The notes under the pieces are model-generated. The model was not told where the DNA came from. It made no database searches and was given only the letters and a program-made list of their open reading frames with translations. The position numbers and the translations under genes were made by a program. Source: Octopus sinensis (lineage: Eukaryota). From it: a stretch of 64,000 bases of DNA. Shown here piece after piece: positions 1,835-61,101 of the stretch; within the stretch, counting starts at the first letter, position 1, and each line of letters starts with the position of its first letter. The stretch lies in assembly GCF_006345805.1 (NCBI RefSeq), contig NC_042998.1, positions 91,760,001 through 91,824,000 on the forward strand, read 5' to 3'.

Positions 1835-2140
1835 ATGTGCCATCTCCACCTGTTGGCCCACTGGTTATCTCAAATGTCACCTACAATTCAGCTGATCTTG
1901 AATGGAAACCATCTGAAAATGATGGTGGAACTTCCATTACAGGATATTTGGTTGAATACAGAACAGCTACCAGAACCACATGGTCAAAGGCAGCAACAGT
2001 GGATCCAAAACAGACAACATATACATGCAGCAATTTGATGGAAGGAACAGAATATTACTTCAGAATTATTGCTGTCAATTCTGAAGGATATAGCCATCCT
2101 CTGGAATCAACTGATGTTACAAAACCAATGAGGGATTTGG
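1835..2140 (+). CDS. FN3 exon 1 (class A, 9-mer unit 1)
   Basis: AG/GT, phase 1-1, 306 nt; VPSPPVGPL...KPMRDL. Confidence 0.92.
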
Positions 2141-2883
2141 GTAAGGATTTAAATTATACATAGTTGATGATTCATTCATTAAAATTTTACCCTATCACAA
2201 AACAAATGTGAGATGAGATCTTAGTAAGTCTTATTTGATAAGGATTTAGTGTTTTTCATCAGTGATATATCTCCTTTTGTAAAATTTCACAATGTTGTAC
2301 ATACACTTTGTTTTATATTGCTATCATGGAAGCAATATTTAAATATTGATAATATACAAGATAAAAGTTATATGAGATTTGTATTAGTGATTCAGAATAA
2401 CTTTAAAATATTCATTATTTCTCTCATGATTTGATTTTAAGCACATACACCCACACATACACATGCTAAATTGTATTTAAATAATATAGGCTTCATAGAA
2501 TAGGTGCTGGTATGGCTATGTGGTTAAGAAGTTTACTTCTGGGGATCCTGTTCCACTGTTTGGTATCTCAGTCAGGAGCCCACTGTCCTGTAAGTGACAA
2601 TAGCTCATTTTATCTCCACAAGAACATACGATTATGACACTGTCAAATCAGGATAAGTTACTGAAAATGCTTTGTATTTACCCCAACTTTAAACTAAAGA
2701 GGTTATATTCTTGAACTGAACATTCCTCATCCAATCATGGGGAAATATTATCATGTTTGAAATAAGTGTGAGTTGGCAAAATGCAGAACATCCAGCCATA
2801 GAAAGTCTACCTCAACTAATTCTGTCTTACGCAAGCATCAAAAAGTGAATGTTAAAACAATGATGATGAAATACTTAAATCTA

Positions 2884-3054
2884 GGTGCAGGAGTGGCTGT
2901 GTGGTAAGTAGCTTGCTTACCAACCACATGGTTTCGGGTTCAGTCCCACTGCGTGGCACCTTGGGGAAGTATCTTCTACTATAGCCTCAGGCTGACCAAA
3001 GCCTTGTGAGTGGATTTCATAGACGGAAACTGAAAGAAGCCCGTTGTATATATG

Positions 3055-3085
<31 letters not shown>

Positions 3086-3296
3086 ATATGTTTGTGTGTC
3101 TGTGTTTGTGCCCCCAACATCGCTTGACAACCAATGCTGGTGTGTTTACATCCCCGTAACTTAGCGGTTCAGCAAAAGAAACCAATAGAATAAGTACTAG
3201 GCTTACAAGGAATAAGTCCTGGGGTCGATTTGCTTCACTAAATGTGGTGCTCCAGCATGGCCACTGTCAAATGGCTGAAACAAGTAAAAGAGTAAA
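2884..3296 (+). mobile_element. tRNA-derived SINE (family 1) with internal TA/TG microsatellite
   Basis: Head ggagtggctgtgtggtaagtagc...ggttcagtcccactg has A/B-box-like motifs. Related copies are at 15634(-), 36771(+), 55360(+) and 60064(-). Confidence 0.75.
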
Positions 3297-3410
3297 TGAA
3301 CATTCATTAACAAGCAATATATTCTTTAAAGAATTTGAAAGTATTTTCTTCTATTGATAATTTATTTCTCTCTATTGTATCAATTGCTTAACATTATTAA
3401 CAATATCAAA

Positions 3411-3620
3411 GGCAGCAAGCTGACAAAATTATTAGCATGTCAGGCAAGATGCAGCTCAGCATTTTATCTGTCTTTATGTTCTGGGTTCAAATTCTGCCAA
3501 GGTTTATTTTGCCTTTCATCCCTTTGGGGTCAATAAACTAAGTACCAATGAAATACTGGGGTTGGTGTAATTGACTAGTCCCCTCCTCCAAAATTTCAGG
3601 CCTTGTGCCTTTAGTAGAAC
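3411..3620 (+). mobile_element. SINE (family 2)
   Basis: ggcagcaagctgacaaaattattagca...gggttcaaattctgcc...gcctttcatcc; related copies at 20601(+), 22690(+) and 35470(-). Confidence 0.6.
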
Positions 3621-3883
3621 ATATTAATTAGATCTATCAAAAGATAAAGGAACCCTTGTTTTCAATAGAATTTGAAACCAGCATTGCAAGTTGCAAAAAA
3701 ATCTGTCAATTTGTAATACTCTCATTGATTACGGAGATGAACAAAGACTCTTCTTGGTGGCAGATTACATCTACATTGGCATATATAAATGTACATAGTA
3801 AAGAGTATGAAACATATTTTTAATATCACAACATTTTTATTGTTTTGCTTGCATGGAACTTATATGTATTATTTCATTTCTAG

Positions 3884-4186
3884 CTCTACCAGGACCACCT
3901 GTCAATGTCCGAGCTAGCAGAGTTGGTGAAGACTTTGTTGAACTTGAGTGGAATCAACCAAAATCAGATGGAGGAACACCAATTACTAAATACCATGTTG
4001 AAATATCTCCATATAAATTAGGAAACTGGACTAAGCTGGCAACTGTTGGAGCTTATGATACATTCTGTAAAGCTACGAGACTTGAAGAAGATATGGACTA
4101 CTATTTCTCTGTATGTGCTGAAAATAAAATTGGAAAAGGTGAAGCTACTGAAACATCGAAACCTGTCACCACAAAGAAGGGACTTT
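3884..4186 (+). CDS. FN3 exon 2 (B1)
   Basis: AG/GT, phase 1-1, 303 nt; LPGPPVNVR...TTKKGL. Confidence 0.92.
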
Positions 4187-4331
4187 GTAAGTATTTTCAC
4201 TTGAATATTTGCAGAAAAATAAATTTATACTTGAAATTAGAATATCATGTTTATTTAAATTATAATCTAGTTAAAAGTAGACAGAAGTATTACAAGAAAG
4301 ATGTTTATATAAATTATAAATTTACTTTCAG

Positions 4332-4637
4332 TGGTTCCATCCAAACCAATTGGTCCTCTTACTGTTACCGATGTCCAACGTAAATCTATCAGCATCAAAT
4401 GGAAAGCACCATCTGATGATGGTGGTTCTCCTATAATTGGATACATCATAGAAAAACGTCCCGAGTCTGCTCGATACTGGTCAAAGGCTGATAAAGTTCG
4501 TGCAGACACCACAGATTATTGTGTTAGGGATCTCCAAGAAAGAACTATGTATCACTTCAGAGTAATTGCTGAAAACAAAATTGGAGAGAGTGAACCTTTG
4601 GAAACTAAGGATGCTACAATGGCCAGAAGTCCATTTG
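4332..4637 (+). CDS. FN3 exon 3 (C1)
   Basis: 306 nt, phase 1-1; VPSKPIGPL...ARSPF. Confidence 0.92.
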
Positions 4638-4845
4638 GTAAGTTTAGTCATTATATATTGAATGTATTTCTTGAAAATTTTGCTTTTAATAGTAAAACAA
4701 AATGTTACATTCAAAATAATTGAAATAACAAAAGTATTTTCATTGAAAAGGCAAAATAATGATCCACCTAAATTTCCATTAATATTCATCACTAACCTCA
4801 ATATACTGAGTGTTATATTACATATATTTCCTATTTATTTCTTAG

Positions 4846-5151
4846 ATGTGCCATCTGCACCAATTGGTCCATTGGAGATCACAAATGTCACCAATAACTC
4901 TGCTGACTTGAGCTGGAAACCATCTGCCAATGATGGTGGTACACCAATAACTGGATACATTATTGAACACAGAATAGATTCCAGAACCTTCTGGACTAAA
5001 GCAGGCACTGTTAATGAGAAAACTACCACATTTACAGTACCAAATCTTACAGAAGACACAAGTTACCATTTCCGCGTCTTTGCTGTTAATGCTGAAGGAC
5101 AGAGCAAACCACTTGAATCTACTGATGTCACAAAACCAGTGAGGAAGATTG
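4846..5151 (+). CDS. FN3 exon 4 (D1)
   Basis: 306 nt, phase 1-1; VPSAPIGPL...KPVRKI. Confidence 0.92.
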
Positions 5152-5282
5152 GTGAGTAATAATCTATTTCTCATTAGAATTTTGTCTTCAGATTTTCAAA
5201 ACTTTGTATTTATATGGTAGGATATTAAAGATTATCAGAGAATTTTGTGTATTAAAAATATTTTATTGGAAATGTTTTTCAG

Positions 5283-5588
5283 AACCACCAAGTGCACCAA
5301 TTTACTTCAGAGCTACACAAGTTGGTCCTGACTTTGCAGTCTTGGAATGGAAGAAACCACATTCAGATGGAGGTTCTAAAATCACCAATTACATCATATC
5401 TGAAATGGGTGGTACATCATCTGATGTGAAGACTAAAGTGAAAACTGTATCAGCTTTTGAACATACTTGTCATTTGAGAGACTTGAAACAGAATCTGTCC
5501 TACTACTTCTGTGTTCAAGCTGAGAACAAAGCTGGTCTAAGTCCTTACTGTAATGCAGAATATGCAGTTACACCAATGCGACCTCTTG
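5283..5588 (+). CDS. FN3 exon 5 (E1)
   Basis: 306 nt, phase 1-1; PPSAPIYFR...TPMRPL. Confidence 0.92.
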
Positions 5589-5708
5589 GTAAGATATTTG
5601 ATATCTCTATTTAATTTTTGTTGATAGATCTTAAACTTTCTTGGTATTTGATGTGAGTTTAACTTGAGAGACATTATTCTATCATTGTGTACTGTTTTGT
5701 ATTTTTAG

Positions 5709-6014
5709 AAAAACCATCGAAACCAATTGGTCCTCTGAAAACCTATGATATTGAGAAAACATCTATTTCCATTTCCTGGAAAGCTCCAGAAGATGATGGA
5801 GGTAGTCCTCTCACTGGTTACATTATTGAGAAGAAAGAAGCTAACAGACAATACTGGAACAATGTGGCTAAGGTAGCACCATCAGTGACCAACTACCGTG
5901 TTGAGGATCTGAGACAGAACTGTGAATATGACTTCAGAGTTACTGCAATTAATAAAATTGGTCACAGTGATCCATTAGAGACTGATGCTTCAACAATGGC
6001 CAAGAGCTCATTCA
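5709..6014 (+). CDS. FN3 exon 6 (F1)
   Basis: 306 nt, phase 1-1; KPSKPIGPL...AKSSF. Confidence 0.92.
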
Positions 6015-6388
6015 GTAAGTCAAATATTTTGCTTCTCATTGATAGTCATTTGTTTATATATTCTTTAGTGTTGTTTTCTTTGTTAGCTTCCTGTTATTGA
6101 ATGGTTCTTGTTTAGAAATGAGTATATAATCATTAGAATTTATGACGATATATTAGTTTCTTTTTATTGATAAAAACATTAATTTTTACTAATTATTTAA
6201 CTTAATTTACCAAATGATATACGCATATGGTAAAAGTCTGAGAAGGAATGTTAAAATAATATTTTTTTTATTGATTGAACAGTTCAATATTTTTAATATT
6301 GGGAAAATGAATGTTGTTGTATTTCAGATCCGTATCTTTGAATAAAATTTCAGAGCAACACATAATATTTCTCTTTATTTGTTTTTAG

Positions 6389-6694
6389 GTGTACCATCTC
6401 GTCCTAAAGGGCCCCTTGAAGTTACCAAAGTCTCTTATGACTATGTGGATCTTGAATGGAGAGCTCCTGACAGTGATGGAGGTACTCCAATCACTAAATA
6501 CATTGTTGAAGTAAGATCTGCTGCACGCATGTCTTGGAACAAAGCAGAAGAAATTGATCCAAAATCTACTGTTGCCAGAGTTACAGGTTTAGTCGAGGGT
6601 ACAGAATATTACTTCCGTGTGATTGCTGTCAATGAGGAAGGAGAAAGTCCACCCTTGGAGACATCAGAATCTACGATACCTTCCAGAGAGAAAA
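6389..6694 (+). CDS. FN3 exon 7 (G1)
   Basis: 306 nt, phase 1-1; VPSRPKGPL...IPSREK. Confidence 0.92.
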
Positions 6695-6819: not shown

Positions 6820-7122
6820 TGCCTCCTGGAATTCCTATTGCTTTCATGGCTTCAAGAATTGGCAAAGACTATGTCAATCTTCAATGGAGACATCCTAAAG
6901 ATGATGGTGGTTCAGCCATTCTCAAATATATTATTAAAATGAGGAAAGATACAAAATCTGATTGGGTCAAACTGATGACAATTGATGGTAGGGAAACAGC
7001 TTACCGTGTACCTGACTTAACTGAGGGTACTGAATACTACTTCTCAGTTAATGCAGAAAACAAAGTTGGACCTGGAAAGTGTGCTGAACTTCCTGAAGCT
7101 GTTGTTCCAACAAGAGAAGCAA
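6820..7122 (+). CDS. FN3 exon 8 (H1)
   Basis: 303 nt, phase 1-1; PPGIPIAFM...VPTREA. Confidence 0.92.
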
Positions 7123-7301: not shown

Positions 7302-7607
7302 CTGTACCTTCATGTCCTACTGGTCCTCTTGACATTACTGATGTCCAACGTACTAGCATCAGTATTAAATGGAAGGCACCAAAGGATGATGGCGGTTCAC
7401 CAATTATTGCTTACAATGTTGAGAAGAAGCATGCTAAAGCCCATATATGGAGTAGGGTGGATCAAGTGGATGCTTCAACATATGAAATGTGTGTTAGAGG
7501 CCTTTATGAGAAGAATGAATATCTCTTCAGAGTTATTGCTGTCAACAAGATTGGACAGAGTCCACCTCTTGAGACAGATGGAGCTACTTTAGCTCGTAGT
7601 CCATTTG
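7302..7607 (+). CDS. FN3 exon 9 (I1)
   Basis: 306 nt, phase 1-1; VPSCPTGPL...ARSPF. Confidence 0.92.
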
Positions 7608-8535: not shown

Positions 8536-8838
8536 ACGTACCATCTGCCCCTGTTGGACCACTTGCTGTGTCAAATATCACCTACAATTCAGCTGATCTT
8601 GAATGGAAACCATCTGAAAAGGATGGTGGAACACCTATAACAGGATATTTGATAGAATACAGAACTGCAACCAGGACAACGTGGTCAAAGGCAGCAGTAG
8701 TAGACTCAAAACAAACAACATATACATGCAGTAATTTGATGGAAGGCACAGAATATTTCTTCAGAATTATCGCTGTGAATGCTGAAGGCCAGAGCCATCC
8801 TCTGGAATCAGATGTTGTCAAACCAATGAGACATTTAG
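8536..8838 (+). CDS. FN3 exon 10 (A2)
   Basis: 303 nt, phase 1-1; VPSAPVGPL...KPMRHL. Confidence 0.92.
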
Positions 8839-9032: not shown

Positions 9033-9335
9033 CTGTCCCTGGAGCTCCCATCAATCTTCATGCAACTCGTGTAGGTGAGAACTTTGTTGAACTTGAATGG
9101 AAGGAACCAAAATCTGATGGTGGCACACCAATCACTAAATACCATATTGCAATATCTCCATTTAAACCAGGAAATTGGACTAAATTAGATACAGTTGATT
9201 CTTATGATTTGTATTGTAAAGCTATTAATCTTGATGAAGATATGACATACTACTTCTCAGTAACTGCTGAAAACAAGATTGGAAAAGGTGAAACAACTGA
9301 AATTTCTGAAGGTGTAACAACTAAGAAAGGACTGT
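9033..9335 (+). CDS. FN3 exon 11 (B2; absent from the ORF track)
   Basis: Translated by hand, open, 303 nt, phase 1-1; VPGAPINLH...TTKKGL. Confidence 0.9.
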
Positions 9336-10570: not shown

Positions 10571-10876
10571 TGGTTCCATCCAAACCAATTGGTCCTCTCA
10601 CTGTTACCGATGTCCAGCGTACTGCTATCAGCATCAAATGGAAAGCACCATCAGATGATGGCGGTTCTCCTATTACTGGATACATCATAGAAAAACGCCA
10701 TGAGTCTGCTCGATTCTGGTCAAAGGTTACTAAAGTCCGTGCTGACACCACAGATTGTTGTGTTAGGGATCTCCAAGAAAGAACCATGTATCACTTTAGA
10801 GTGATTGCTGAAAACAAAATTGGAGAGAGTGAACCTTTAGAAACAAAAGAAGCAACAATGGCCAGAAGTCCATTTG
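10571..10876 (+). CDS. FN3 exon 12 (C2)
   Basis: 306 nt, phase 1-1; VPSKPIGPL...ARSPF. Confidence 0.92.
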
Positions 10877-11688
10877 GTAAGTTCAATTATTTCAAAGTGA
10901 ATGTATCATTGAAAATTTGCTTTTAATGGTAACTAAGACAATTTAAACACCATATAAAAAAAATGGCAACATAAAATGTGCAAACCAAGCTCCTTCACTT
11001 TGTTAATTTTACAAATTGAATTTATTAGTCATTATTATTTAGTCCAATTGGGATAAATGGAGTGAGTACTAGCAAAATATTAATATTAATTTACTTGACT
11101 GTAGCACTCTCAAAAAGGTTAGAAATCATTATTATTCATGTTACAGAGGGTGGTGAAAGGTAGAGTCAGTTGATAGTTGAACAAAATGCCTTGAAATATT
11201 CAGTTATGTGTTTTCACATTCTAATTCATTTTATACTTGGGTCAATTAATTTTCAATCTTTCAACATTAACTATTGATGTAGCAACATCTAAATTAAGAA
11301 ATTTCATAAAACACCTAATTTGTAGAATACTTATTGTACTGTGATTATTTCTGGATTCTGTAATTCTGTTATAAAATCTTCCCACTCCACATCAGACAAA
11401 AAGAGAAAAGACTTCAATACATATATCAATATACTCCTGTTTATTTCACAAGGGAGTGTCTTAATCTTTATAAGCAAATGTATGTACGACTTATATGTGA
11501 CAAAAATGTATGTGCAATAAGTGCTAAAATAAAATAACGAATGAAATAAAAATTGGATGTACAAGTGCAATAGCTGTGGCCATTTAGCTTAAATATTTTA
11601 AGAAGCTGCATGAAATGTATCAAAGAATCTAACAACAATAATAGCTTGAAAGATTATTCATTCATCTATGTTTTTAATTATTTCTTAG

Positions 11689-11994
11689 ATGTGCCATCTG
11701 CACCAGTTGGTCCATTGGAGATCACAAATGTCACCAATAATTCTGCTGACTTGAGCTGGAAACCATCTGCCAATGATGGTGGTACACCAATAACTGGATA
11801 CATTATTGAACACAGAATAGATTCCAGAACCTTCTGGACTAAAGCAGGCACTGTTAATGAGAAAACTACCACATTTACAGTACCAAATCTTACAGAAGAC
11901 ACAAGTTACCATTTCCGTGTCTTTGCTGTTAATGCTGAAGGACAGAGCAAACCACTTGAATCTACTGATGTCACAAAACCAGTGAGGAAGATTG
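11689..11994 (+). CDS. FN3 exon 13 (D2)
   Basis: 306 nt, phase 1-1; VPSAPVGPL...KPVRKI. Confidence 0.92.
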
Positions 11995-12126
11995 GTGAGT
12001 AATAATCTATTTCTCATTAGAATTTTGTCTTCAGATTTTCAGAAGCTTTGTATTTATATGGTAGGATATTAAAGATTATCAGAGAATTTTTTGTATTAAA
12101 AATATTTTATTGGAAATGTTTTTCAG

Positions 12127-12432
12127 AGCCACCAAGTGCACCAATTTACTTCAGAGCTACACAGGTTGGTCCTGACTTTGCAATCTTGGAATGGAAGAAA
12201 CCACATTCAGATGGAGGTTCTAAAATCACCAATTACATCATATCTGAAATGGGTGGTACATCATCTGATGTGAAGACTAAAGTGAAAACTGTATCAGCTT
12301 TTGAACACAGTTGTCATTTGAGAGACTTGAAACAGAATCTGTCCTACTACTTCTGTATTCAAGCTGAGAACAAAGTTGGTCTAAGTCCTTACTGTAATTC
12401 AGAATATGCAGTTACACCAATGCGACCTCTTG
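12127..12432 (+). CDS. FN3 exon 14 (E2)
   Basis: 306 nt, phase 1-1; PPSAPIYFR...TPMRPL. Confidence 0.92.
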
Positions 12433-12552
12433 GTAAGACATTCAATATCACTGTGTAATTTTTGTTGATAGATCTTAAACTTTCTTGGTATTTGATGTAA
12501 GTATAACTTGAGAGACATTATTCTATCATTGTGTACTGTTTTGTATTTTTAG

Positions 12553-12858
12553 AAAAACCATCGAAACCAATTGGTCCTCTGAAAACCTATGATATTGAGA
12601 AAACATCTATTTCCATTTCCTGGAAAGCTCCAGAAGATGATGGAGGTAGTCCTCTCACTGGTTACATTATTGAAAAGAAAGAGGCTAATAGACAATACTG
12701 GAGCAATGTGGCTAAGGTAGCACCATCAGTGACCAACCACCGTGTTGAGGATCTGAGACAGAACTGTGAATATGAGTTCAGAGTTACAGCAATCAATAAA
12801 ATTGGTCTTAGTGATCCATTAGAGACCGATGCATCAACAATGGCAAAGAGCTCATTCA
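12553..12858 (+). CDS. FN3 exon 15 (F2)
   Basis: 306 nt, phase 1-1; KPSKPIGPL...AKSSF. Confidence 0.92.
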
Positions 12859-13141
12859 GTAAGTTATATATTTGAATTGTCTCATATAATCAATGTCTTA
12901 AAATTTTTTTGATGTAGTATTAGTTACTAATTATGTAACGTTTTACTTCATAAAAGTTTTTGTGATTACCTTATAATCTTTATAAATTTTATAAGCTTAA
13001 TAAATTTCACTTGGTTTTGAGAAAAAGTTAAATTTCTTATCTTCCTTATTTGAACTGATTTTGTATTTGAAATTTTATGTTTATACATTTGCAAATAAAT
13101 GTATGGAGCGGTACATTTTATTGTTTCTCTGTGTTCTCTAG

Positions 13142-13447
13142 GTGTACCATCTCGTCCTAAAGGGCCACTTGATATTACCAAAGTCTCTTATGACTATGTT
13201 GATCTTGAATGGAAAGCTCCTGACAGTGATGGAGGCACTCCTCTCACTAAATATATTGTTGAAGTAAGATCTGCTGCACGTGTGTCGTGGCTCAAAGCAG
13301 AAGAAATTGATCCCAAATGTACTGTTGCCAGAGTTCTTGGTTTAGTTGAGGGAACTGAATATTACTTCCGTGTGATTGCTGTTAATGAAGAGGGTGAAAG
13401 TCAACCTTTGGAGACAACAGAGTCTGCAACACCAACTAGAGACATAA
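13142..13447 (+). CDS. FN3 exon 16 (G2)
   Basis: 306 nt, phase 1-1; VPSRPKGPL...TPTRDI. Confidence 0.92.
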
Positions 13448-13651: not shown

Positions 13652-13954
13652 ATGTGCCTGGTGTACCTTATGACTTTAGATATAGTAAATTAGGAAAATC
13701 ACATGTTACCTTAGAATGGAGAACACCACATGATGATGGTGGCTCTAAAATCCTCAAGTATTCCATCAAAATGAAGAAAGATAAGAAATCTGATTGGGAA
13801 AAACTCATGACTGTTGATGGAAATGAAAGAAATTGTAAGGTGACAGATCTGGAAGAAGGCCAAGAATATTACTTTGCTGTATGTGCTGAAAATAAGAAGG
13901 GCAGCGGTAAACTGGCAGAAATGCCTGGACCTGTTATTCCCAAAAAGGAGTCAA
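13652..13954 (+). CDS. FN3 exon 17 (H2)
   Basis: 303 nt, phase 1-1; VPGVPYDFR...IPKKES. Confidence 0.92.
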
Positions 13955-14975: not shown

Positions 14976-15281
14976 CTGTTCCCTCAGCACCTGCTGGACC
15001 TCTGGAAATTACGAAAGTGCAGCGCACTGCCATTAGTATCCAATGGAAACCTCCTCAAGATGATGGTGGATCTCCAGTTACTGACTATATTGTAGAAAGA
15101 AAAGTACCACGTGCATTGCTATGGACAAGGATTGATAAAGTTGATGCTCACACACTGGAAATGTGCTGTGAAAATCTTTATGAAAAACATGAGTACTTGT
15201 TCAGAGTAACAGCTGTAAATGTCATTGGACATGGCCCTTACTTGGAGAGTGATGGAGTAACTTTGGCAAGAAGTCCATTCG
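14976..15281 (+). CDS. FN3 exon 18 (I2)
   Basis: 306 nt, phase 1-1; VPSAPAGPL...ARSPF. Confidence 0.92.
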
Positions 15282-16179: not shown

Positions 16180-16485
16180 ATGTTCCATCTGCTCCTGTTG
16201 GTCCACTGAAAGTAAGCAATGTTACCATAGATTCTGCTGACTTGGAATGGGAACCTCCAGAAAAAGATGGTGGTAGTCCACTTACTGGTTATGTCATTGA
16301 ATACAGGACTAGTACAAGATCGACATGGTCCAAATCTGGAATGGTTGACGCAAAATCTACAAAATATACTGTTCCAAACCTGTTGGAGGGTAATGAATAT
16401 TTCTTCCGCATTATTGCTGTCAATGATGAAGGACCAAGCCGGCCCTTAGCTTCAACAGAAATTGTTAAACCAATGAGAACATTAG
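16180..16485 (+). CDS. FN3 exon 19 (A3)
   Basis: 306 nt, phase 1-1; VPSAPVGPL...KPMRTL. Confidence 0.92.
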
Positions 16486-16615: not shown

Positions 16616-16918
16616 CTTTGCCTGGAGTCCCAGTAGATCTGAGAGCCAGCAGAGTCGGTGAAGATTTTGTTGAAATGGAATGGGATGCACCTAAATCTGA
16701 TGGCGGTTCTGCAATAATTAACTATCATTTGCAAATATCTGCATTTAAGCCTGGAGACTGGCAAAAACTTGCTAAAGTTTCTGCTTATGATACATATTGC
16801 CGAGCTGTTCGTCTTGAAGAGGACATGGATTATTACTTTGCTGTCTGTGCTGAAAATAGTCTTGGTAAAGGTGAATTTTGTGAAATGACAAAACCAGTCA
16901 AAACCAAACGAGGATTAC
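16616..16918 (+). CDS. FN3 exon 20 (B3)
   Basis: 303 nt, phase 1-1; LPGVPVDLR...KTKRGL. Confidence 0.92.
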
Positions 16919-20760: not shown

Positions 20761-20834
20761 CATTATTATTATCATTATTATTATTACTGTTTTTTTTTCT
20801 TCCTTTCTTCAAATTTTCTTCCATTTTATTATTA

Positions 20835-20867
<33 letters not shown>

Positions 20868-20935: not shown

Positions 20936-20941
20936 TTTCAG

Positions 20942-45497: not shown

Positions 45498-45803
45498 GTG
45501 CTCCTTCTGCTCCTGAAGGACCTTTAACTGTATCTGATGTCACAGATTCATCAGCAACCATAAAATGGAGACCACCTCTTTCAGATGGTGGACTACCAAT
45601 TATTCACTATATCATTGAATATAAGGTTGATATCTGGGGAAGCTGGATGAAAGCAGGTAAAGCTGACTATGAGGAAAACAAATACAATGTTAAAAACCTC
45701 AATGAAGGAAAGCAATACTATTTCAGAGTTTCTGCTGAAAATCCTCAAGGTATCAGTCCACCATTGGCAACTATTGATCCAATTGTTCCAAGAAAAGAAC
45801 CAG
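45498..45803 (+). CDS. FN3 exon 52 (d2; absent from the + ORF track)
   Basis: Translated by hand, open, 306 nt; APSAPEGPL...VPRKEP. Confidence 0.9.
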
Positions 45804-45957: not shown

Positions 45958-46257
45958 AACCCCCATCATCACCAGTTGGACCTGTAAAATTCATTGATGC
46001 AACAATCTCATCAGTTACTTTGGGATGGCGTACACCAAGAGATGATGGCAGATCAGCTATCACTGGCTATAAAATATACCTCTATGTGGATGACAAGTGG
46101 AAATGTATTAAAACTGTTGATGGAAATACATTTAAATACAAGGTTGAAGACCACATCAAAGAAGGTGGCAAATACTTTTTCAGAATAACAGCTGTCAATG
46201 CTTTAGGAGAAAGTACTCCACTTGATTCTGATATGTATGCTCCTAAGAAAGAGAAAG
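45958..46257 (+). CDS. FN3 exon 53 (e2)
   Basis: 300 nt; PPSSPVGPV...APKKEK. Confidence 0.9.
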
Positions 46258-46864: not shown

Positions 46865-47164
46865 TTGTACCATCAGAGCCAGTTGGTCCTATCGTTGTAA
46901 GTAATATCCAGAGAAGTTCAGTAGTTATTGAATGGAAACCACCTGTTCAAGGTCATCCTCTTACTGCTTACATAATTGAGCGTAAAGAAAAGACAAGATC
47001 TTTCTACAGTAAAGTACAATCAGTTGATGAAAGCATAAATAAATTATCTATAACAAATTTGATAGAAGGAAATGAATATTTCTTCCGAGTTATTGCTGAA
47101 AATGAAGTTGGTCCTGGTAAACCTCTTGAAATGGAAGACCCAGTTTTGATTAAGAGCCCTTACA
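46865..47164 (+). CDS. FN3 exon 54 (f2)
   Basis: 300 nt; VPSEPVGPI...IKSPY. Confidence 0.9.
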
Positions 47165-47962: not shown

Positions 47963-48268
47963 AAAAACCATCAGCTCCAGAAGGTCCTTTGGTTCAAAGC
48001 AATTTGACTGAAGAATCGGTAGATCTTAAATGGAAACCTCCTACTGATGATGGTGGCTTACCAATTACACATTATGTTATTGAAGTACGAGAAATTAATA
48101 GACAAACATGGAGCTTTATGTGTGAAATAAGATCAACTTCCACAAATTACACTGTAACTGGATTGGTACCTGGAATGCAGTACTTCTTCAGAATTTCAGC
48201 TAAGAATGATGAAGGGCAAGGACCTCCTCTCACATCAGACCAACCAGCTAGACCTGTGAAAGCAGCAA
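47963..48268 (+). CDS. FN3 exon 55 (a3)
   Basis: 306 nt; KPSAPEGPL...RPVKAA. Confidence 0.9.
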
Positions 48269-48589: not shown

Positions 48590-48892
48590 CTGTTCCCAAA
48601 TCACCAGAATTCTTAGGTATCAAGAGTATTGGAAAAGATCTTGTTACTATGGAATGGGGAAAACCATTAGATGATGGTGGATCAGATATCACAAATTACA
48701 TCGTTGAATACTGCCCAGAAGGAAAAGATAAGTGGATTCAGGCTGCTAAAGTTGGAGCTTTCGTAAACTATTATGTTGTTACTGACTTGGAAACTGAAAA
48801 ATTATATTATTTCGGCATTTCTGCTGAAAATGAAATTGGTCAAAGCTGCAGGCTAGAGACACAAGGACCAATAAAGACAGTGAAACCAATTG
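48590..48892 (+). CDS. FN3 exon 56 (b3)
   Basis: 303 nt; VPKSPEFLG...KTVKPI. Confidence 0.9.
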
Positions 48893-49383: not shown

Positions 49384-49689
49384 AGGTACCTACAGCACCT
49401 GAAGGACCGCTTGTGATTGAAAATGTCAAGCGTAATTCTGTTGGGCTTACATGGAAAGCTAGTAAAGATGATGGTGGTTCTCCAATTTTGTCATACATTA
49501 TTGAACAAAGAGAATCATGGAGAACAAGTTGGCAATATGTTGATTGTGTCTCACCAAAGACCTTTGAGTATGTTATTAGAAAACTTCAAGAAGGTCAAGA
49601 GTATACATTCCGAATTATTGCTGAAAACAGTGTTGGCGTATCATCTCCATTAGAGGCCAAGAAACTTATCAAGATTCTAAGTCCGTTTG
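49384..49689 (+). CDS. FN3 exon 57 (c3)
   Basis: 306 nt; VPTAPEGPL...RESWRTSW...ILSPF. Confidence 0.9.
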
Positions 49690-50336: not shown

Positions 50337-50639
50337 CTCCACCTGATCCTCCAGCACATCTTCGTATTGAAGATATAACTAGTAAATCAGTAACCTTAGA
50401 ATGGGATACTCCACAGTTTGATGGAGGTAAACCTATTAGTGGTTATGTTATTGAACGGCGAGACCTTTCTCAACTTTCATGGCTTCAAGTTGGAGAAACT
50501 GGTACATTGCACACAAGATTCATTGCAGAAAAATTGGTTGAAGGAAAAGAATATCAGTTCCGAGTCTTTGCTGTTAACAGTGAAGGCCGCAGCAAACCAA
50601 ATGAAATAAAGGAGCCTATTATACCATTGAAAGTTGCTA
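50337..50639 (+). CDS. FN3 exon 58 (d3)
   Basis: 303 nt; PPDPPAHLR...IPLKVA. Confidence 0.9.
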
Positions 50640-50804: not shown

Positions 50805-51098
50805 CTGTTCCTTCAGCTCCTGGTGGACCAGTTATTTTCAAATCAATTACAGCAACATCTGTGACACTGGAATGGCTACCTCCTAAGAACAATGGTGGCG
50901 CTTCTATCAAACATTATCGTATTGAATATGCTACTGATACTGCTGACTGGAAAACAGTTGACATAAGTGATGTTGAGTATATCAGAGTACCTGATCTTCA
51001 AACTGATCAGCCATATTACTTCCGTATTACAGCAATAAATGCAGTTGGACAGAGCAAATACTTGGAATCAGACATTTTCATTCCTAAAAAGCCCCTGT
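50805..51098 (+). CDS. FN3 exon 59 (e3)
   Basis: 294 nt; VPSAPGGPV...IPKKPL. Confidence 0.9.
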
Positions 51099-51675: not shown

Positions 51676-51978
51676 GTCCACCTAATCCTCCATCTGGTCC
51701 TATCAGCATTGTTGAAATTACCAACGAGGCTGTCACTCTTGAATGGAAGCCTCCAACAGATGATGGTGGATGTGCTGTTACAGAATATGTTGTTGAAAAA
51801 CGTGAAGCAAACAGGATGATGTGGCAGTTTTCAGAAAGAGTCTATGATGATACTTTTGCTACCATTAAAAACCTTTCTGAAGGCGATGCTTTCTTCTTCC
51901 GTGTGCTTGCATTGAACAGAGTTGGATGCAGTGCACCATTAGACATGGATGTACCTGTTATTATCAAGAGTCCATTTG
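51676..51978 (+). CDS. FN3 exon 60 (f3; absent from the ORF track)
   Basis: Translated by hand, open, 303 nt; PPNPPSGPI...IKSPF. Confidence 0.9.
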
Positions 51979-52356: not shown

Positions 52357-52662
52357 AACTTCCATCAGCTCCAACTGGTCCTCTGAAAATATCTCATATC
52401 ACTGAGAACTCTGCTGATTTAGAATGGGCCCCACCAAGATATGATGGTGGAACTCCTATTACAATGTATGCCATTGAAATTCGAGAGCTTAGACGTAAAC
52501 TCTGGGGCAGAGCAGGAACAGTGGATGCATACACTACCAGATTCACTGCTAGAAATCTTGTTGTGAACTATGAATACTTCTTCAGAGTTAGAGCCATCAA
52601 CAAAGAAGGAGAAGGACCTGCTCTTGAAGGATACGACAGTGCTTGTCCAAAGATGAAGCTTG
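52357..52662 (+). CDS. FN3 exon 61 (a4)
   Basis: 306 nt; LPSAPTGPL...CPKMKL. Confidence 0.9.
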
Positions 52663-52811
52663 GTAAGAAAATATTTTTTTTAACGTTTTATTTTCATCAA
52701 AATGATAAAATAGGATTTGAAATAATTTTAATGTTATCCAATTCCACATTTTGTTTTTTAAAAATATATTATAATGTGTTTTTAATACATATGTATCTAA
52801 CTATATATATA

Positions 52812-53705
52812 CTTGGCAAACTTGGATGTCCAGATCACTTTGTAACTATAATTAAATCATTTCATGATGAGATAGAGGAGGCTTGGGTCAATGTTGGTGG
52901 TGGCATGGCAGGACTCATTTCTGAAAAGAATGATGTCAAGCAGGGTGACATCCTTGCCCCAACTCTCTTTTCTTTGTACTTCGCTACTGCTTTTACTCAT
53001 GCTTTTACTAAGGTTAGCTCTCTGAGAATATATGTTAGGTATCGATCTTCTGGCCACCTCTTTAATCTGCTGATTTGCTGCCAATTCAAAAGTTTTCCAG
53101 TCTCTTCATGACCTTTATGTAGATGACTGTGACTTAGTCACTCATACAGAAGATGACATGCAAATACTTATGAATCATATTCCTGCTTCTTGCAAGGCAT
53201 TTGGACTCAGCACTAGCCCTGGATAAGACTGTTGTAATGTTCCAGCCTGCACCAGGAAATCCATATGGAGAACCAGCTATCTTGGTTGAAAGAACAATTC
53301 TGAAAGTGGTAGACAAATTTGTCTACCTGGGCAACACATTCAGCCATTCTTGCACCCTGGATGATGAAATATCTTTCAGGTTGCAGAGAGCAACTGATTC
53401 CTTTCAGTCTATTCAGTCTCATGTCTGACCCCAGCATGGCATCACATAGCAAACAAAAATTGCTGTGCACCATGCATGTATACTGACATTGCTCCTTTAT
53501 TCATGTGAGACATGGACCCTTTACAAACATCATGTAAGGGCCCTTGAATGCTTTCATCAGAAATGTCTCAGAGACATTCTGAATGTTGGCTGGACCTTAA
53601 AAACTTCAGACACACAGGTCCTGAGAACAGCTGATATCTTGAGTATTGAGAGGCAATGGTGCACAAGAACTGGTTACATTGGACTGGACACCTTATTATT
53701 AGAAT
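52812..53705 (+). mobile_element. 5'-truncated, frameshifted RTE-type non-LTR retrotransposon (reverse transcriptase remnant), intron 61
   Basis: Translations LGKLGCPDHFVTIIKSFHD...VKQGDILAPTLFSLY, LYVDDC (degenerate YADD), VVDKFVYLG and LLLYSCETWTLY...FHQKCLRDIL are typical RTE RT motifs. Confidence 0.85.
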
Positions 53706-53708
53706 GAA

Positions 53709-53745
<37 letters not shown>

Positions 53746-54011: not shown

Positions 54012-54308
54012 AATTGCCTTCATCTCCAGTAGGTGTCAAAATCACATCTATTGGATGCGATAATTGCACTATTGAATGGAGAGAACCTAGATTTGATGGT
54101 GGTGATAGCATAAAATCTTATAACATCTACCTCTGCCAAGATGGCAACTGGGCAAAAATAGACACAGTGGACTCCTTTGTCAATATGTATACTGCTAAAA
54201 AATTACGCAGTGACAAACTTTACTTGTTTGGAGTTGCAGCTGAAAATGAAGTTGGTTCAAGTAAAATTGTACCTGTTCCAAATGCTATTACTCCTGAGAA
54301 GAAAATAT
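54012..54308 (+). CDS. FN3 exon 62 (b4)
   Basis: 297 nt; LPSSPVGVK...TPEKKI. Confidence 0.9.
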
Positions 54309-54929: not shown

Positions 54930-55235
54930 ATGCTCCATCAAGACCTATTGGACCATTATCTGTAAATAACATAACAAAATCATCGGCTGTGATATCATGG
55001 AAGCTTAGTGAAAATTATGGTGGATCACCAATCATAAGTTATATCACTGAAAAGAAAGAGACTTGGAAGTCTTCATGGGCAATGGGTGAAAGGGTTCCTG
55101 CAAATACTACATCATGTGAATTAACTTTCCTCTCTGAAGACTGTGAATATCATGCACGAGTGTTTGCTGAAAACAGCGCTGGGCTGTCTGAACCATTGAT
55201 GACTACTGAACCATTCTTGGTCAGAAGTCCTTACG
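54930..55235 (+). CDS. FN3 exon 63 (c4)
   Basis: 306 nt; APSRPIGPL...KETWKSSW...VRSPY. Confidence 0.9.
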
Positions 55236-56278: not shown

Positions 56279-56578
56279 GTAAACCATCTGCTCCTCGAGA
56301 TCTGGATGTAAGTGAAGTTGGTGCTGACTTTGTTACTCTGAAATGGTCTGCACCAAAGAGTGATGGAGGAAAACCTATAAATTCCTATTCGATTGAGAAA
56401 CGAGATATGACTCGTATGATATGGGTCCATGTTACTGATGTTAAACCAGGATCAAGAGAATTTACTATCAAGAAACTTTTGGAAGGACGAAATTATCAAT
56501 TCAGAATCTCAGCTACAAATGAGGAAGGGGAAGGATCTTTTGCACAGTCTGATATTGTCAGCTGTGAAAAGCCTCCTG
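56279..56578 (+). CDS. FN3 exon 64 (d4)
   Basis: 300 nt; KPSAPRDLD...SCEKPP. Confidence 0.9.
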
Positions 56579-56799: not shown

Positions 56800-57099
56800 A
56801 AAAACCAGATATTCCTTCAGGTTCTCTTCAACCTTGTCATGTAACAGAATCTTCTGTTACAATGGACTGGTTGCCTCCATATTATGATGGTGGTTCAAGA
56901 TTATTGTATTATATCCTGGAAATTAAAGAATCTGATTCAGATAAGTGGTTAGAGGTTACTAGAACACTAGATACCTCATGCCTCATACGTGGTCTTTTTG
57001 AAGGAATGGAATATGATTTCAGAGTGAGTGCTGTTAATGCCATTGGTGCTAGCAGACCACTGCCTACAGAAAAACCAGTAATTCCAACCAGACAATCAG
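56800..57099 (+). CDS. FN3 exon 65 (e4)
   Basis: 300 nt; KPDIPSGSL...IPTRQS. Confidence 0.88.
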
Positions 57100-57347: not shown

Positions 57348-57653
57348 AAACTCCTTCAATTCCACTTGGACCACTTAACGTTTCTGATATAACTCGTAAT
57401 TCCTCGACACTATCCTGGAAACGTCCCAGTGATGATGGTGGTTGTCCAATTATTGGATATCTGATAGAAAAATTGGATCTTGTTTGGGGCTTTTGGGTTA
57501 GAGCAGCATATGTTCCCGCAGAAGATACAAATTGCACTCTGCATGATTTAGCTGAAAACCATAGCTACAATTTCAGAGTTTATGCTCATAATGAAATTGG
57601 ATACAGTGAGCCTTTGGAATTGAGGGCCCCTGTGAAAATAAAGAGCCCATATA
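57348..57653 (+). CDS. FN3 exon 66 (f4)
   Basis: 306 nt; TPSIPLGPL...IKSPY. Confidence 0.9.
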
Positions 57654-58400: not shown

Positions 58401-58437
<37 letters not shown>

Positions 58438-58488
58438 TATATTTATATGCATAAATATGTAATTTGGATAATTTAAAACTATTTTCAG

Positions 58489-58785
58489 ATAAACCTTCAG
58501 CACCACAGAACTTGCATGTAACAGAAGTAACTGAAGATAGTGTCACACTGGAATGGACACGACCTCTTGATTTTGGTGGTACAGACTTGTATGGCTATGT
58601 GATTGAAAGATGTGATGGTAGTTCAACAAATTGGAGAGCAATTGGTAGAACCACACAAACAATGCATATGGTTGATGGTTTACAAGAAGGCCGTCAATAT
58701 AGATTCAGAGTGGCAGCAGAAAATGTTGAAGGCATTGGTAATGCTGTATGGCTTGCCTGTCCTGTTATGCCACGTAGACCAATTG
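58489..58785 (+). CDS. FN3 exon 67
   Basis: 297 nt; KPSAPQNLH...MPRRPI. Confidence 0.9.
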
Positions 58786-59311
58786 GTAAGATTTTATTTT
58801 TTTATTTATAAATTTTACAGCCTTTTTTTAGAATATTTAAATGGATTTAAACTTGTTAGAATTAATTTTGTAATTCATAAATTAAACATATTTCATCAGT
58901 CTGTACATTTTAGATTTGACAAAGTTTTGTAAGAAACATGATTATAAATATTTAAATTCTAAGCATTTTTCATCATTTGTATTGGTAGAAGTACACAGTT
59001 CTCAACAGCGGTTCTCATCCTTGGACTATATGACCCTTGAGGGCTCATATATGATTTTGTTGTTAGAATTCATCTGCACAAAATATTTTAAACAATTATT
59101 TTGTATACAATTCCTAATAATATTTAATTGTAAAAATATATGATCTTTTAAAACATCAAATGGTTAGGAAGGTCCTTTTGAATAAAATAGAATTCAAAGG
59201 TTTAAAATTTTCAACTAATTTTCAAAGTCTTGAATAAAATGCCTTCATATAGAAATGCCATCAAAAATATTAAAGTAAATTTCTTATAATAACTTTGCTT
59301 TTTGTCAATAG

Positions 59312-59611
59312 AACTTCCTGGAGTACCTGAAGATCTTGATATTGGACAAATTACTCAATGGTCTGCTTCCCTTTACTGGAGAAAACCAATTAATGATGGT
59401 GGATCTCCAATTACCACCTATGCAATTGAACAGAGTTGGGCAGGTTCTGACTGGACTGAAATTGTTACACTGGATGCTGCTGTACATTCATATACAGTCC
59501 GAGACCTCTATGAAAATGTTGAAACATATTACAGAATCAGAGCAAAGAATGTTGCTGGTTGGGGAGACTACAAAGAATTACCTCAAACAGTTGTACCTAA
59601 GAAGGCCCCAG
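59312..59611 (+). CDS. FN3 exon 68
   Basis: 300 nt, donor G|gtttgt; LPGVPEDLD...VPKKAP. Confidence 0.88.
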
Positions 59612-60063
59612 GTTTGTTTAACATAGAATCTTTCTCTTCAATTGTATATATATATATATTTTTTTTTTTTCAATATTTTCAATAGTTAACTAATCTGCAG
59701 TACATAAAGCTTGAGGAAGATATACATGATTTTGAAGAACCAATAAACATGATTTTTATATTGAAATTGAAACTTTGATATTGGTTTATATAAATATGAA
59801 AGCAAATGATAGCTAAATTTGCAATTATATGAATGACAAATAAAAAGAATTAAATTTTCTTGCAATTAATAACCTATCTAATTTCATTCAAAGAAATATC
59901 CAGAACTTTGATATAGTTGTGTGATTAAGAAGCTGTGTGTGGCTTTAGGTTTGATCGCATAGTATTGAATCTTGGGCAAGTCTTAGGCAGAGACTGTGCA
60001 TGCAGAAACATTTGTGTGTGTGTATGTGCGCACACGCATGCATGTGTGTGTTCATGTAGTTTT

Positions 60064-60286
60064 TTCTTGTTTCTGTCATTAGACTGTAGCCATGCTGTCG
60101 TACCACCGTGAAGGGTTTAATTGAGCAAATTTACCCCAGTACTTATTTTTTAAAGTGTTGTACTTATTGTTTTTGTTTCTTATTGCTGAACTGCTAAGTA
60201 ACAGGGACATAAACAAAACAACACTGGTTGTCAAGCAGTGGTTGGGGACAGACACAAACACACATATACATAGACACATACACATG

Positions 60287-60326
<40 letters not shown>

Positions 60327-60487
60327 CACACAATAGGCTTCTTCCAATTTCCATCTATTAAACCCAGTCACAAAGCTTTGGTCAGCCTGAGGCTATAGTA
60401 GAAGGTACTTGCTGAAAGTAACATGCAGTCAGATTGAACTCAGAACCATATTGCTGGGAAGTAAGTTTCTTACCACACAGCTATGCC
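60064..60487 (-). mobile_element. SINE family 1, reverse orientation
   Basis: Reverse complement of the 2884 copy, with internal (TA)n. Confidence 0.7.
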
Positions 60488-60795
60488 ACATGTGTGTATG
60501 TTTGTCAGTACCTATAGCTGTGTTTTTGTTTACTTATGCAAATAAGGTATTATGTCCTTTTATGTCAAGGGGCAACTTAGTAATCTAAAAATAAGAAATC
60601 AATAAAATAAATTCCAAGCTAGCATAAGTACTGAGTTTGACATAATTGTTTAATATCCTTGAAAGCAGTGCACCCCAAATGGCTACAGTCCAATGAATGA
60701 AGCTAATAACTTAATAAAATAAATTAAACATATATTACAAGTGAGTAAAAATGAAATTAATGCTTATACCATTTTCGTTTTTGTTTTTCGTCCAG

Positions 60796-61101
60796 GTTGC
60801 CCATCAGTTCCTATTGGGCCAATAATTATCAAAGATGTTAATGAAGACAATGTTACCATTGAATGGTCACCCTCTGTTATGGATGGTGGAGCTCGTATAC
60901 TCGGTTATATTGTTGAAAGGTTTGACAGACGAAACAGTGCCTGGCGAAAATGTACTCGTGTGTCTGCTGATTCTACTAATGCTTATATCAGAAGCCTTGT
61001 ACCCGGAGATTCTTACCAATTTAGAGTCATGGCTTTTAACGAAGTTGGACTTAGTCTTCCATTGGAAACTGAGATTATTGTTCTTCCCAAAGCATCAGCA
61101 G
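60796..61101 (+). CDS. FN3 exon 69 (last FN3 exon in the window)
   Basis: 306 nt; CPSVPIGPI...LPKASA. Confidence 0.9.

Follow-up and report, generated by a model that had tools for sequence, protein, structure and literature searches.

How should a run of FN3 domains be read when it extends over some 59 kb with no Ig or kinase domain in it: as a protein of its own, or as one part of a larger muscle protein? The question is raised by a stretch of 64,000 nucleotides of Octopus sinensis (contig NC_042998.1, positions 91,760,001 to 91,824,000; called the window below), which carries an array of FN3 exons on its plus strand. We approached it through the exon structure, the identity of the domains, their periodicity, the purifying selection on them, their orthologs and the neighbors of these orthologs in other genomes. 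Our analysis suggests that the array is probably a 59-kb internal part of a giant gene of the titin family, namely the central FN3 rod of a twitchin paralog that also has Ig and kinase parts. These parts would be joined in a single transcript expressed in muscle.

The FN3 exon array

The window is AT-rich eukaryotic DNA (29-36% G+C) with dozens of open stretches of ~100-170 codons each on its plus strand. We rebuilt the exons independently and placed the splice sites from the sequence alone, using an acceptor AG that follows a pyrimidine tract and lies 22-23 codons 5' of the conserved Trp, and a GT donor 21-22 codons past the motif Y-x-F-R-V. This gives 69 FN3 exons, from D1 (1835-2140) to D69 (60796-61101), each encoding one FN3 domain, with AG/GT borders in 69 of 69 and phase 1-1 likewise in all of them. 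The exons are 294-306 nt long (39 of 306, 21 of 303, six of 300, two of 297 and one of 294 nt), and the introns between them measure 114-2006 nt. Joined, they make 20,985 nt, i.e. 6,995 codons without a stop; an open frame of this length in 32% G+C DNA is far beyond chance. The D68-D69 splice junction is supported by a UniParc entry of 201 amino acids, which corresponds to exactly these two exons joined and is 97% identical. D1 begins in phase 1 without a start codon.

All recognizable domains of the joined protein are of the FN3 type. The Pfam family fn3 (PF00041) matches the two halves of the protein, which had been cut inside D35, in 34 separate stretches each; only families of the FN3 clan were matched, and there was no match to I-set, Ig or Pkinase in the 69-exon protein. 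The remaining plus-strand open stretches of at least 40 amino acids in the window match no Pfam family at E<=1. When the window with its exons masked was compared on both strands with 120 titin- or twitchin-like proteins (Ig, FN3 and kinase) using tblastn, the best hit had an E value of 0.37, while the same 120 queries detect the Ig, FN3 and kinase exons flanking the ortholog in the snail Bulinus truncatus at E 1e-6 to 1e-41. These searches indicate that no additional exon of the titin type is present in the introns and flanks, which make up 43 kb. Scanning the window for Rfam families and tRNAs gave no match either. The original prediction, which had been made from the DNA letters and their open reading frames (ORFs), had described 69 in-frame exons of 20,985 nt and 6,995 amino acids, all of them FN3, with neither Ig nor kinase in the window; our reconstruction arrives at the same numbers and end coordinates, Pfam on the spliced coding sequence returns fn3 throughout, and the Ig exons sought in the introns by Pfam and masked tblastn did not turn up.

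The rod is built of A-B-C triplets, as the domain-pair identities at a lag of three domains indicate. These identities are 32-35% at lags not divisible by 3 and 46% at lags 3 and 6 within D1-D45. Over all 69 domains the lag-3 identity is 41.8%, compared to 36.1 +/- 0.85 in shuffled orders, and none of 5000 shuffles reaches the observed value. The N-terminal consensus is DVPSAP.GPL..SNVT..S.DLEW for class A,.PG.P..LRA..VG.D.V.LEW for class B and VPSKP.GPL.VTDVQR.S.SIKW for class C. A longer period is superimposed on D1-D45, which form five super-repeats of nine FN3 domains with a consensus of its own at each of the nine positions. Here the mean identity at lag 9 is 64.4% versus 38.8 +/- 1.6 in shuffles (0 of 5000 reach it), and D1-D9 are 59-99% identical to D10-D18. 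D46-D69 are older, diverged copies, with a lag-3 identity of 35.7% versus 33.6% (reached by 42 of 5000 shuffles).

We also considered whether one class takes the place of the Ig in the Fn-Fn-Ig unit of twitchin (Fn and Ig standing for the two kinds of module). Hidden Markov models (HMMs) of the classes were scored against twitchin FN3 domains grouped by their context; no class could be mapped clearly in this way, and class B is just the most divergent. Class B, lacking the GPL motif and being the least twitchin-like in sequence, would be the best candidate for a family-specific contact.

The FN3 exons are coding sequence under selection, since the ratio of nonsynonymous to synonymous substitution rates (dN/dS) has values of mostly 0.11-0.38 when paralogous domains are compared, synonymous sites being close to saturation in the older copies. 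The same range between equivalent super-repeat positions indicates that the position-specific sequences are maintained by selection. An array inflated by assembly duplication, or a dead one, could be suspected from a single 1.2-kb stretch: 4832-6029 (D4-D6 with their introns) and 11675-12873 (D13-D15) are 96.8% identical, introns included, which reflects either a recent gene conversion or duplication or a unit mis-copied in the assembly. This pair is the sole exception, however, as the DNA-level similarity between the other super-repeat copies is restricted to exons and their introns have diverged. With 6,995 codons free of stops, dN/dS well below 1, D66-D69 conserved in a cuttlefish and the annotated fragment 97% identical, we consider an artefact or a pseudogene very improbable.

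Relatives of the array and their neighbors in other genomes

The array has FN3-only orthologs in gastropods. We searched protein databases with D46-D69, and none of the matches is longer than ~4,200 amino acids. The best one is the hypothetical protein Btru_006487 of Bulinus truncatus (4143 amino acids, 42% identical over 100% of the query), followed by 'titin-like' proteins of Patiria miniata and Saccoglossus kowalevskii, a partial protein of Lottia gigantea (LOTGIDRAFT_176120) and a 'twitchin-like' protein of Lingula anatina, and then by hundreds of twitchins and titins at 26-30% identity. Counted with an HMM built from the 69 domains, Bulinus has 40 uninterrupted FN3 domains, Patiria 40 and a single Ig, Saccoglossus 31 and 19, Lottia 17, and Lingula 14 and a single Ig. 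The Bulinus and Lottia proteins are orthologs, being 39-42% identical, FN3-only, of A-B-C rhythm (identities of 47% versus 36% in Bulinus and 71% versus 38% in Lottia) and collinear at the C-terminal end; in Bulinus D56-D69 correspond domain by domain to d26-d39, and an extra FN3 domain (d40) follows the equivalent of D69. They differ from the window in size, with 40 FN3 domains in Bulinus (43 including neighboring models) compared to at least 69 here, and in having neither the nine-domain super-repeat nor the Gln/Tyr-rich exon described below. The models of Patiria, Saccoglossus and Lingula share the long uninterrupted FN3 runs (40, 31 and 14) but are 33-38% identical to the window, their triplet rhythm being weak (Patiria) or absent (Saccoglossus, Lingula). 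Among the models of these five species and the window, the nine-domain period was found in the window only. The titin-family loci of Patiria and Lingula also carry Ig domains, and that of Lingula a kinase as well; the Saccoglossus models are FN3-only.

A closer relative is found in short reads. A query of D68-D69 found a 73% identical ORF on Logan contigs of two companion runs, one of which, ERR12945500, is given in the literature as a short-read run of the cuttlefish Acanthosepion esculentum; the contig of the other run (L011) is longer and has the same gene layout. The cuttlefish match marks the window as cephalopod, and the 97% identity of the UniParc fragment suggests an octopod. Its order is D66, D67, D68, D69, a 604-nt exon rich in Gln, Tyr, Ser and His, and one more FN3 domain, D70, which ends in VIPNRLFG just as Bulinus d40 ends in VIPKRVFG.

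The domains are of the muscle type. The closest solved structures by sequence are those of the titin A-band, 8g4l (E 4e-122) and 8q6t, with the triple-FN3 A-band entry 8bnq matching over a whole triplet at E 4e-46, and MyBP-C and myomesin come next in the PDB ranking. The array thus has its nearest relatives in titin, twitchin, MyBP-C and myomesin, and it shares with this superfamily the layout of one module per exon in phase 1-1 (69 of 69) and the super-repeats (periods 3 and 9). Most known proteins with long runs of FN3 alone are extracellular, and the array has many N-x-S/T sites, so an extracellular protein of the tenascin, usherin, sidekick or myotactin (LET-805) type might be considered. 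But extracellular FN3 proteins such as Dscam, contactins, receptor phosphatases and fibronectin match at E 1e-17 or worse, compared to 4e-122 for titin; the orthologous loci encode I-set domains and a titin-type kinase; and no EGF, laminin or transmembrane exon is seen among the open stretches of the window, the N-terminus lying outside it. We regard this explanation as highly unlikely.

Ig modules, and in Bulinus and Lingula a kinase too, are encoded next to the orthologous arrays. On the Bulinus contig, a 2359-amino-acid model rich in I-set domains ends 1.4 kb upstream of the FN3-only model, and 1.6 kb downstream of it begins a 2014-amino-acid model with the order fn3, fn3, I-set, I-set, fn3, Pkinase, all on the same strand. 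The final exons of the upstream model are Fn-Ig-Ig-Fn, the last with a phase-1 donor, and 1.5 kb further on, the first genuine FN3 exon in the middle model has a phase-1 acceptor; the annotated N-terminus of the middle model is a short ab initio exon. At the other end, the d40 exon closes in phase 1 with TTTG/GTAAGT (here and below the slash marks the exon border); the FN3 exon that comes next has an acceptor likewise of phase 1, and Fn, Ig, Ig, Fn and five kinase exons follow. Lingula has a same-strand order of a 5657-amino-acid Ig-rich model, which ends 0.4 kb before the array, the 14 FN3 domains with their Ig, and then I-set, Ig, fn3, Pkinase, the gaps being 0.4-2.4 kb. In Patiria three FN3/Ig models abut on the same strand, one gap being 12 nt, and no kinase was found in the stretch read. 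Since these neighbors are close, on the same strand and, in Bulinus, compatible in phase, the array is most likely the middle of one titin-family gene that has been split by annotation; judged from these sequences, the annotations of the three species look as if they divided one giant locus into two or three adjacent 'hypothetical', 'titin-like' or 'twitchin-like' genes.

An alternative hypothesis could be that the window encodes an independent giant protein with a promoter of its own and neither Ig nor kinase, i.e. a new class of filament protein. The lack of Ig and kinase in the window is in its favor, and so are the FN3-only public models of Bulinus, Lottia and Saccoglossus and the stop-bearing exons discussed in the next section. 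However, with all its FN3 exons in phase 1-1 the array cannot initiate translation alone, the N-terminus annotated for the Bulinus model is no more than the short ab initio exon, and the distances given above for Bulinus (1.5 kb past a run ending in phase 1), Lingula and Patiria leave this hypothesis unlikely in our judgement.

The kinases linked to the orthologous arrays form a pair outside twitchin. Those of Bulinus and Lingula, of the HLDLKPEN type, show a mutual identity of 68%, compared to 53-58% with the twitchin kinases of protostomes, that of Lingula among them, and 41-47% with the chordate titin group; a neighbor-joining tree made without bootstrap from a thin sampling pairs them outside both groups. 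It could be argued that the window is the FN3-rich core of a twitchin/projectin (UNC-22) ortholog, as twitchins at 26-30% identity are among the best non-orthologous matches and several homologs are named 'twitchin-like'. Lophotrochozoan twitchins, including those of Haliotis, Lingula, Lymnaea, Nucella and Owenia, are nevertheless built on Fn-Fn-Ig, with FFI or FFFI patterns (F for FN3, I for Ig) in eight of them and FN3 runs of 2-3 domains; Lingula has a separate twitchin gene on another contig, and the kinase adjoining the orthologous arrays, though not seen in the window itself, falls outside the twitchin clade in the tree just described. A twitchin core is hence scarcely probable.

These comparisons decide what becomes of the remaining parts of the original prediction. 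It had held that the array is not a standard twitchin core, with which the short FN3 runs of twitchin and the separate kinase agree, and that the array probably continues upstream of the window; a continuation outside the window is very probable given the phase-1 beginning of D1 without a start codon and the D70 exon on the cuttlefish contig. Its central proposal of a distinct FN3-only protein without Ig or kinase is not supported, as in Bulinus, Lingula and Patiria neighbors with Ig domains, and in the first two also a kinase, lie on the same strand at distances of 12 nt to 2.4 kb. The proposal is probably wrong for the whole gene but may hold in part for one isoform. The novelty it had claimed survives in part. 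The Ig-free FN3 sequence class is not new, FN3-only models of Bulinus and Lottia being present, unnamed, in public annotations; yet we found in the literature no paper describing an Ig-free FN3 rod in a titin-family gene, and no mention of Btru_006487 or LOTGIDRAFT_176120. A study of connectin evolution (PMC12198301, 2025) analyzes octopus and oyster genes for their kinase and SEC14 domains without treating this FN3 architecture.

The exon after D69 and a possible ruler

The array is followed, 2.2 kb past D69, by an open exon of a different kind. It spans 63279-63882 (604 nt, 201 codons), is rich in Gln, Tyr, Ser, His and Arg, and matches no Pfam family. Its acceptor, ttcttcag/AG, is compatible in phase 1 with D69, and an in-frame TAA at 63884-63886 overlaps a possible donor CAG/GTAAC after 63882. 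The cuttlefish counterpart lies at the same position and has the same length of 604 nt; the two are 34.5% identical over the full length (tblastn E 2e-10) and share the ending CGAAGCAG/GTAAC, which reads in frame as S-R-stop. The 120 nt past the stop can also be aligned between octopod and cuttlefish, unlike ordinary introns. In a close relative the exon is open and 92.3% identical with one in-frame indel, compared to 87.9% with many gaps in the sequence upstream of it. The substitutions relative to this species are spread evenly over the codon positions (14:13:19), indicating a weakly constrained tail as expected of a disordered segment, which this sequence probably encodes. A word-indexed search and a full HMMER search of 1.84 billion representatives returned a 196-amino-acid ORF of the close relative as the sole homolog, and no annotated protein in which the tail sequence is fused to FN3. 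Five further Logan contigs (L002-L006) are collinear with the genome and so carry no splicing evidence.

The tail exon would provide an alternative end of the protein. With 604 nt, entered in phase 1 and left in phase 2, it cannot join the phase-1 exon D70 in frame, and the sequence features suggest that 63279-63886 probably serves as an alternative last coding exon, followed by a 3' untranslated region of its own. If it is included, the protein would end after D69 without a kinase; if it is skipped, splicing would proceed to D70 beyond the window. Similar ends may exist outside cephalopods. An intronless 4.4-kb metatranscriptome contig of the Joint Genome Institute (L009), from another organism, encodes 14 FN3 domains, a tail of 57 amino acids and a stop, and in Bulinus we predicted a stop-bearing tail exon after d40 (33793-33960 of its contig L001). 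The alignment of the Bulinus tail with that of the transcript (4060-4233) scores 47, compared to 20 +/- 4 for shuffled sequences, which suggests, at the level of sequence, an alternative C-terminus conserved in the gene family outside cephalopods. Kinase-less isoforms of such genes probably exist, and for the octopus gene a kinase-less isoform is plausible while an Ig-free one is not.

Two further observations concern these tails. The tail of Bulinus is also similar to the latter half of an FN3 domain. A likeness between it and the tail exon of the window, noticed by eye, was rejected, the score being 29 and the shuffle mean 29.5.

The whole gene, put together from the octopus array and its orthologous loci, would have an Ig-rich N-terminal part, the FN3-only rod, the order Fn-Fn-Ig-Ig-Fn-kinase and further Ig domains. 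In the titin A-band, the FN3 domains are found on the backbone of the thick filament, where they bind MyBP-C and the tails of myosin; eleven titin domains take ~43 nm, or ~3.9 nm each, so that the super-repeat matches the filament period. By analogy with the FN3-rich titin A-band, the octopus rod might extend along a filament of periodic structure, for which the myosin/paramyosin thick filament is the most likely candidate, and each position of the 3- or 9-domain repeat would contact an equivalent site of the lattice. At the ~3.9 nm per domain of the titin C-zone, a triplet would measure ~12 nm, a super-repeat ~35 nm and the 69 domains ~270 nm.

Several points weigh against a central rod on the thick filament within one Ig- and kinase-bearing gene. 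A super-repeat of ~35 nm does not fit the 43-nm myosin repeat, and neither the triplet nor the super-repeat length matches the myosin repeats of 14.5 and 43.5 nm. The Ig and kinase parts of the octopus gene are predicted from orthology alone, and in the annotations of Bulinus, Lingula and Patiria the pieces figure as genes of their own. The conserved exon with a stop that follows D69 points to the array as a C-terminal end; with the stop-bearing tails of Bulinus and L009, the array could be the true end of its gene and the kinase gene a tandem neighbor. Moreover, the kinase tree has the limits stated above. The same tails bear on the hypothesis of an independent FN3-only protein, in whose favor count the conserved exon behind D69 and the spliced transcript of another organism that stops after 14 FN3 domains with a tail homologous to the predicted Bulinus one.

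We speculate, with little confidence, that a kinase-less giant may be the main product of the gene. It would consist of an Ig-free rod of at least 69 FN3 domains with a Gln/Tyr-rich tail, whose 3- and 9-domain repeats might measure out, like a ruler or vernier, the paramyosin-cored thick filament in the obliquely striated muscle of cephalopods. Two super-repeats would cover ~70-72 nm, close to the paramyosin period of 72.5 nm, which must be taken as numerology until tested. If this were true, protostomes would have evolved a titin-like template of the thick filament out of FN3 alone, and this independently of the Ig/FN3 super-repeats of vertebrates.

Features of the window and comparison with known systems

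Table 1. Features of the 64,000-nt window. Rows D01-D69 share the same basis: AG/GT borders, phase 1-1, open frame and Pfam fn3. SR, super-repeat; pos, position within it.
Feature	Position	Strand	Remark
5' flank, part of intron	1-1834	+	no titin-like exon (Pfam, tblastn)
FN3 exon D01	1835-2140	+	SR1 pos 1, class A
FN3 exon D02	3884-4186	+	SR1 pos 2, class B
FN3 exon D03	4332-4637	+	SR1 pos 3, class C
FN3 exon D04	4846-5151	+	SR1 pos 4, class A; 99% amino acid identity with D13
FN3 exon D05	5283-5588	+	SR1 pos 5, class B
FN3 exon D06	5709-6014	+	SR1 pos 6, class C
FN3 exon D07	6389-6694	+	SR1 pos 7, class A
FN3 exon D08	6820-7122	+	SR1 pos 8, class B
FN3 exon D09	7302-7607	+	SR1 pos 9, class C
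FN3 exon D10	8536-8838	+	SR2 pos 1, class A
FN3 exon D11	9033-9335	+	SR2 pos 2, class B
FN3 exon D12	10571-10876	+	SR2 pos 3, class C
FN3 exon D13	11689-11994	+	SR2 pos 4, class A
FN3 exon D14	12127-12432	+	SR2 pos 5, class B
FN3 exon D15	12553-12858	+	SR2 pos 6, class C
FN3 exon D16	13142-13447	+	SR2 pos 7, class A
FN3 exon D17	13652-13954	+	SR2 pos 8, class B
FN3 exon D18	14976-15281	+	SR2 pos 9, class C
FN3 exon D19	16180-16485	+	SR3 pos 1, class A
FN3 exon D20	16616-16918	+	SR3 pos 2, class B
FN3 exon D21	17273-17578	+	SR3 pos 3, class C
FN3 exon D22	18737-19042	+	SR3 pos 4, class A
FN3 exon D23	20021-20323	+	SR3 pos 5, class B
FN3 exon D24	20942-21247	+	SR3 pos 6, class C
FN3 exon D25	21650-21955	+	SR3 pos 7, class A
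FN3 exon D26	23962-24264	+	SR3 pos 8, class B
FN3 exon D27	25451-25756	+	SR3 pos 9, class C
FN3 exon D28	25937-26242	+	SR4 pos 1, class A
FN3 exon D29	26424-26726	+	SR4 pos 2, class B
FN3 exon D30	27513-27815	+	SR4 pos 3, class C
FN3 exon D31	28036-28341	+	SR4 pos 4, class A
FN3 exon D32	28468-28770	+	SR4 pos 5, class B
FN3 exon D33	29310-29615	+	SR4 pos 6, class C
FN3 exon D34	30294-30599	+	SR4 pos 7, class A
FN3 exon D35	31069-31371	+	SR4 pos 8, class B
FN3 exon D36	32028-32333	+	SR4 pos 9, class C
FN3 exon D37	32720-33025	+	SR5 pos 1, class A
FN3 exon D38	34359-34661	+	SR5 pos 2, class B; weak donor CC/GTTAGT
FN3 exon D39	34970-35275	+	SR5 pos 3, class C
FN3 exon D40	36414-36719	+	SR5 pos 4, class A
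FN3 exon D41	37525-37827	+	SR5 pos 5, class B
FN3 exon D42	38071-38376	+	SR5 pos 6, class C
FN3 exon D43	38491-38796	+	SR5 pos 7, class A
FN3 exon D44	38987-39289	+	SR5 pos 8, class B
FN3 exon D45	39606-39908	+	SR5 pos 9, class C
FN3 exon D46	40932-41237	+	start of divergent C-terminal part
FN3 exon D47	41983-42282	+	
FN3 exon D48	42725-43027	+	
FN3 exon D49	43652-43957	+	
FN3 exon D50	44373-44675	+	
FN3 exon D51	44979-45284	+	
FN3 exon D52	45498-45803	+	
FN3 exon D53	45958-46257	+	
FN3 exon D54	46865-47164	+	
FN3 exon D55	47963-48268	+	
FN3 exon D56	48590-48892	+	matches Bulinus d26
FN3 exon D57	49384-49689	+	matches Bulinus d27
FN3 exon D58	50337-50639	+	
FN3 exon D59	50805-51098	+	matches Bulinus d29
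FN3 exon D60	51676-51978	+	matches Bulinus d30
FN3 exon D61	52357-52662	+	matches Bulinus d31
FN3 exon D62	54012-54308	+	
FN3 exon D63	54930-55235	+	
FN3 exon D64	56279-56578	+	
FN3 exon D65	56800-57099	+	matches Bulinus d35
FN3 exon D66	57348-57653	+	matches Bulinus d36; ortholog in cuttlefish contig L011
FN3 exon D67	58489-58785	+	matches Bulinus d37; ortholog in L011
FN3 exon D68	59312-59611	+	donor CCAG/GTTTGT; junction to D69 as in UniParc fragment; ortholog in L011
FN3 exon D69	60796-61101	+	last FN3 in window; best match Bulinus d39; ortholog in L011
Non-FN3 exon, Gln/Tyr/Ser/His/Arg-rich, ~201 codons, TAA-terminated	63279-63886	+	from sequence; conserved in close relative and cuttlefish

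The introns contain other sequence of several kinds. The D61-D62 intron holds, at ~52,700-53,710 of the plus strand, a degenerate, frame-shifted fragment of a reverse transcriptase of the long interspersed nuclear element type, recognized from two adjacent open stretches with weak matches to Pfam RVT_1 (E 0.03-0.04) at consecutive profile positions. One interspersed repeat has three intronic copies that are 72-88% identical (2889-3302, 36778-37061 and 60049-60481, the last inverted), and a second short element occurs in several introns, e.g. at 33338-33616, one of its frames reading GCTRLQSDL..FL.LDALPNANHS.SVVGAF. A long T-rich tract of low complexity (20,680-20,940, plus strand) abuts the D24 acceptor, all three frames being runs of I, L, Y or F. 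An imperfect palindrome of ~260 nt lies in the D25-D26 intron (23162-23425; opposite-strand self-match of 75% identity), and many (TA)n and (CA)n microsatellites are found in other introns.

The super-repeats of the titin A-band are the textbook protein ruler, and it is an open question whether a comparable ruler exists in the thick filaments of invertebrates, which vary in length and have paramyosin cores. The octopus locus offers a testable candidate for a thick-filament template in molluscan muscle and bears on the origin of the titin super-repeats. As the Ig-free block is flanked by Ig-rich and kinase sequence in a gastropod and a brachiopod, and is similarly placed in a sea star, and as FN3-only models also exist in a hemichordate, the architecture may be old and widespread. 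The splitting of the locus into separate genes in three genomes is also a warning for annotation.

Among the known systems, the titin A-band resembles the array in its muscle-type FN3 domains of ~100 amino acids, one per exon, and in a position-specific super-repeat under selection; at the orthologous loci the likeness extends to Ig-Ig-Fn-kinase downstream and Ig-rich sequence upstream. The super-repeats of vertebrate titin, however, have 7 or 11 domains and always include Ig (Ig-Fn-Fn-Ig-Fn-Fn-Fn and so on), whereas the repeats in the window are of 3 and 9 domains and Ig-free over 69 domains. The array-linked kinases are also nearer to twitchin (53-58%) than to the Ciona titin kinase (46-47%). 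Alternative last exons are known in giant muscle genes from the Novex-3 isoform of titin and the short isoforms of the kettin type, to which the exon at 63279-63886 may be likened without any sequence similarity, in that its stop would truncate the protein ahead of the kinase. Twitchin (UNC-22) and projectin belong to the same superfamily and share the three-module rhythm and, with the orthologous loci, a kinase of the HLDLKPEN type. The unit is nevertheless Fn-Fn-Fn here and Fn-Fn-Ig there, and twitchin is a separate gene with a kinase in a separate clade.

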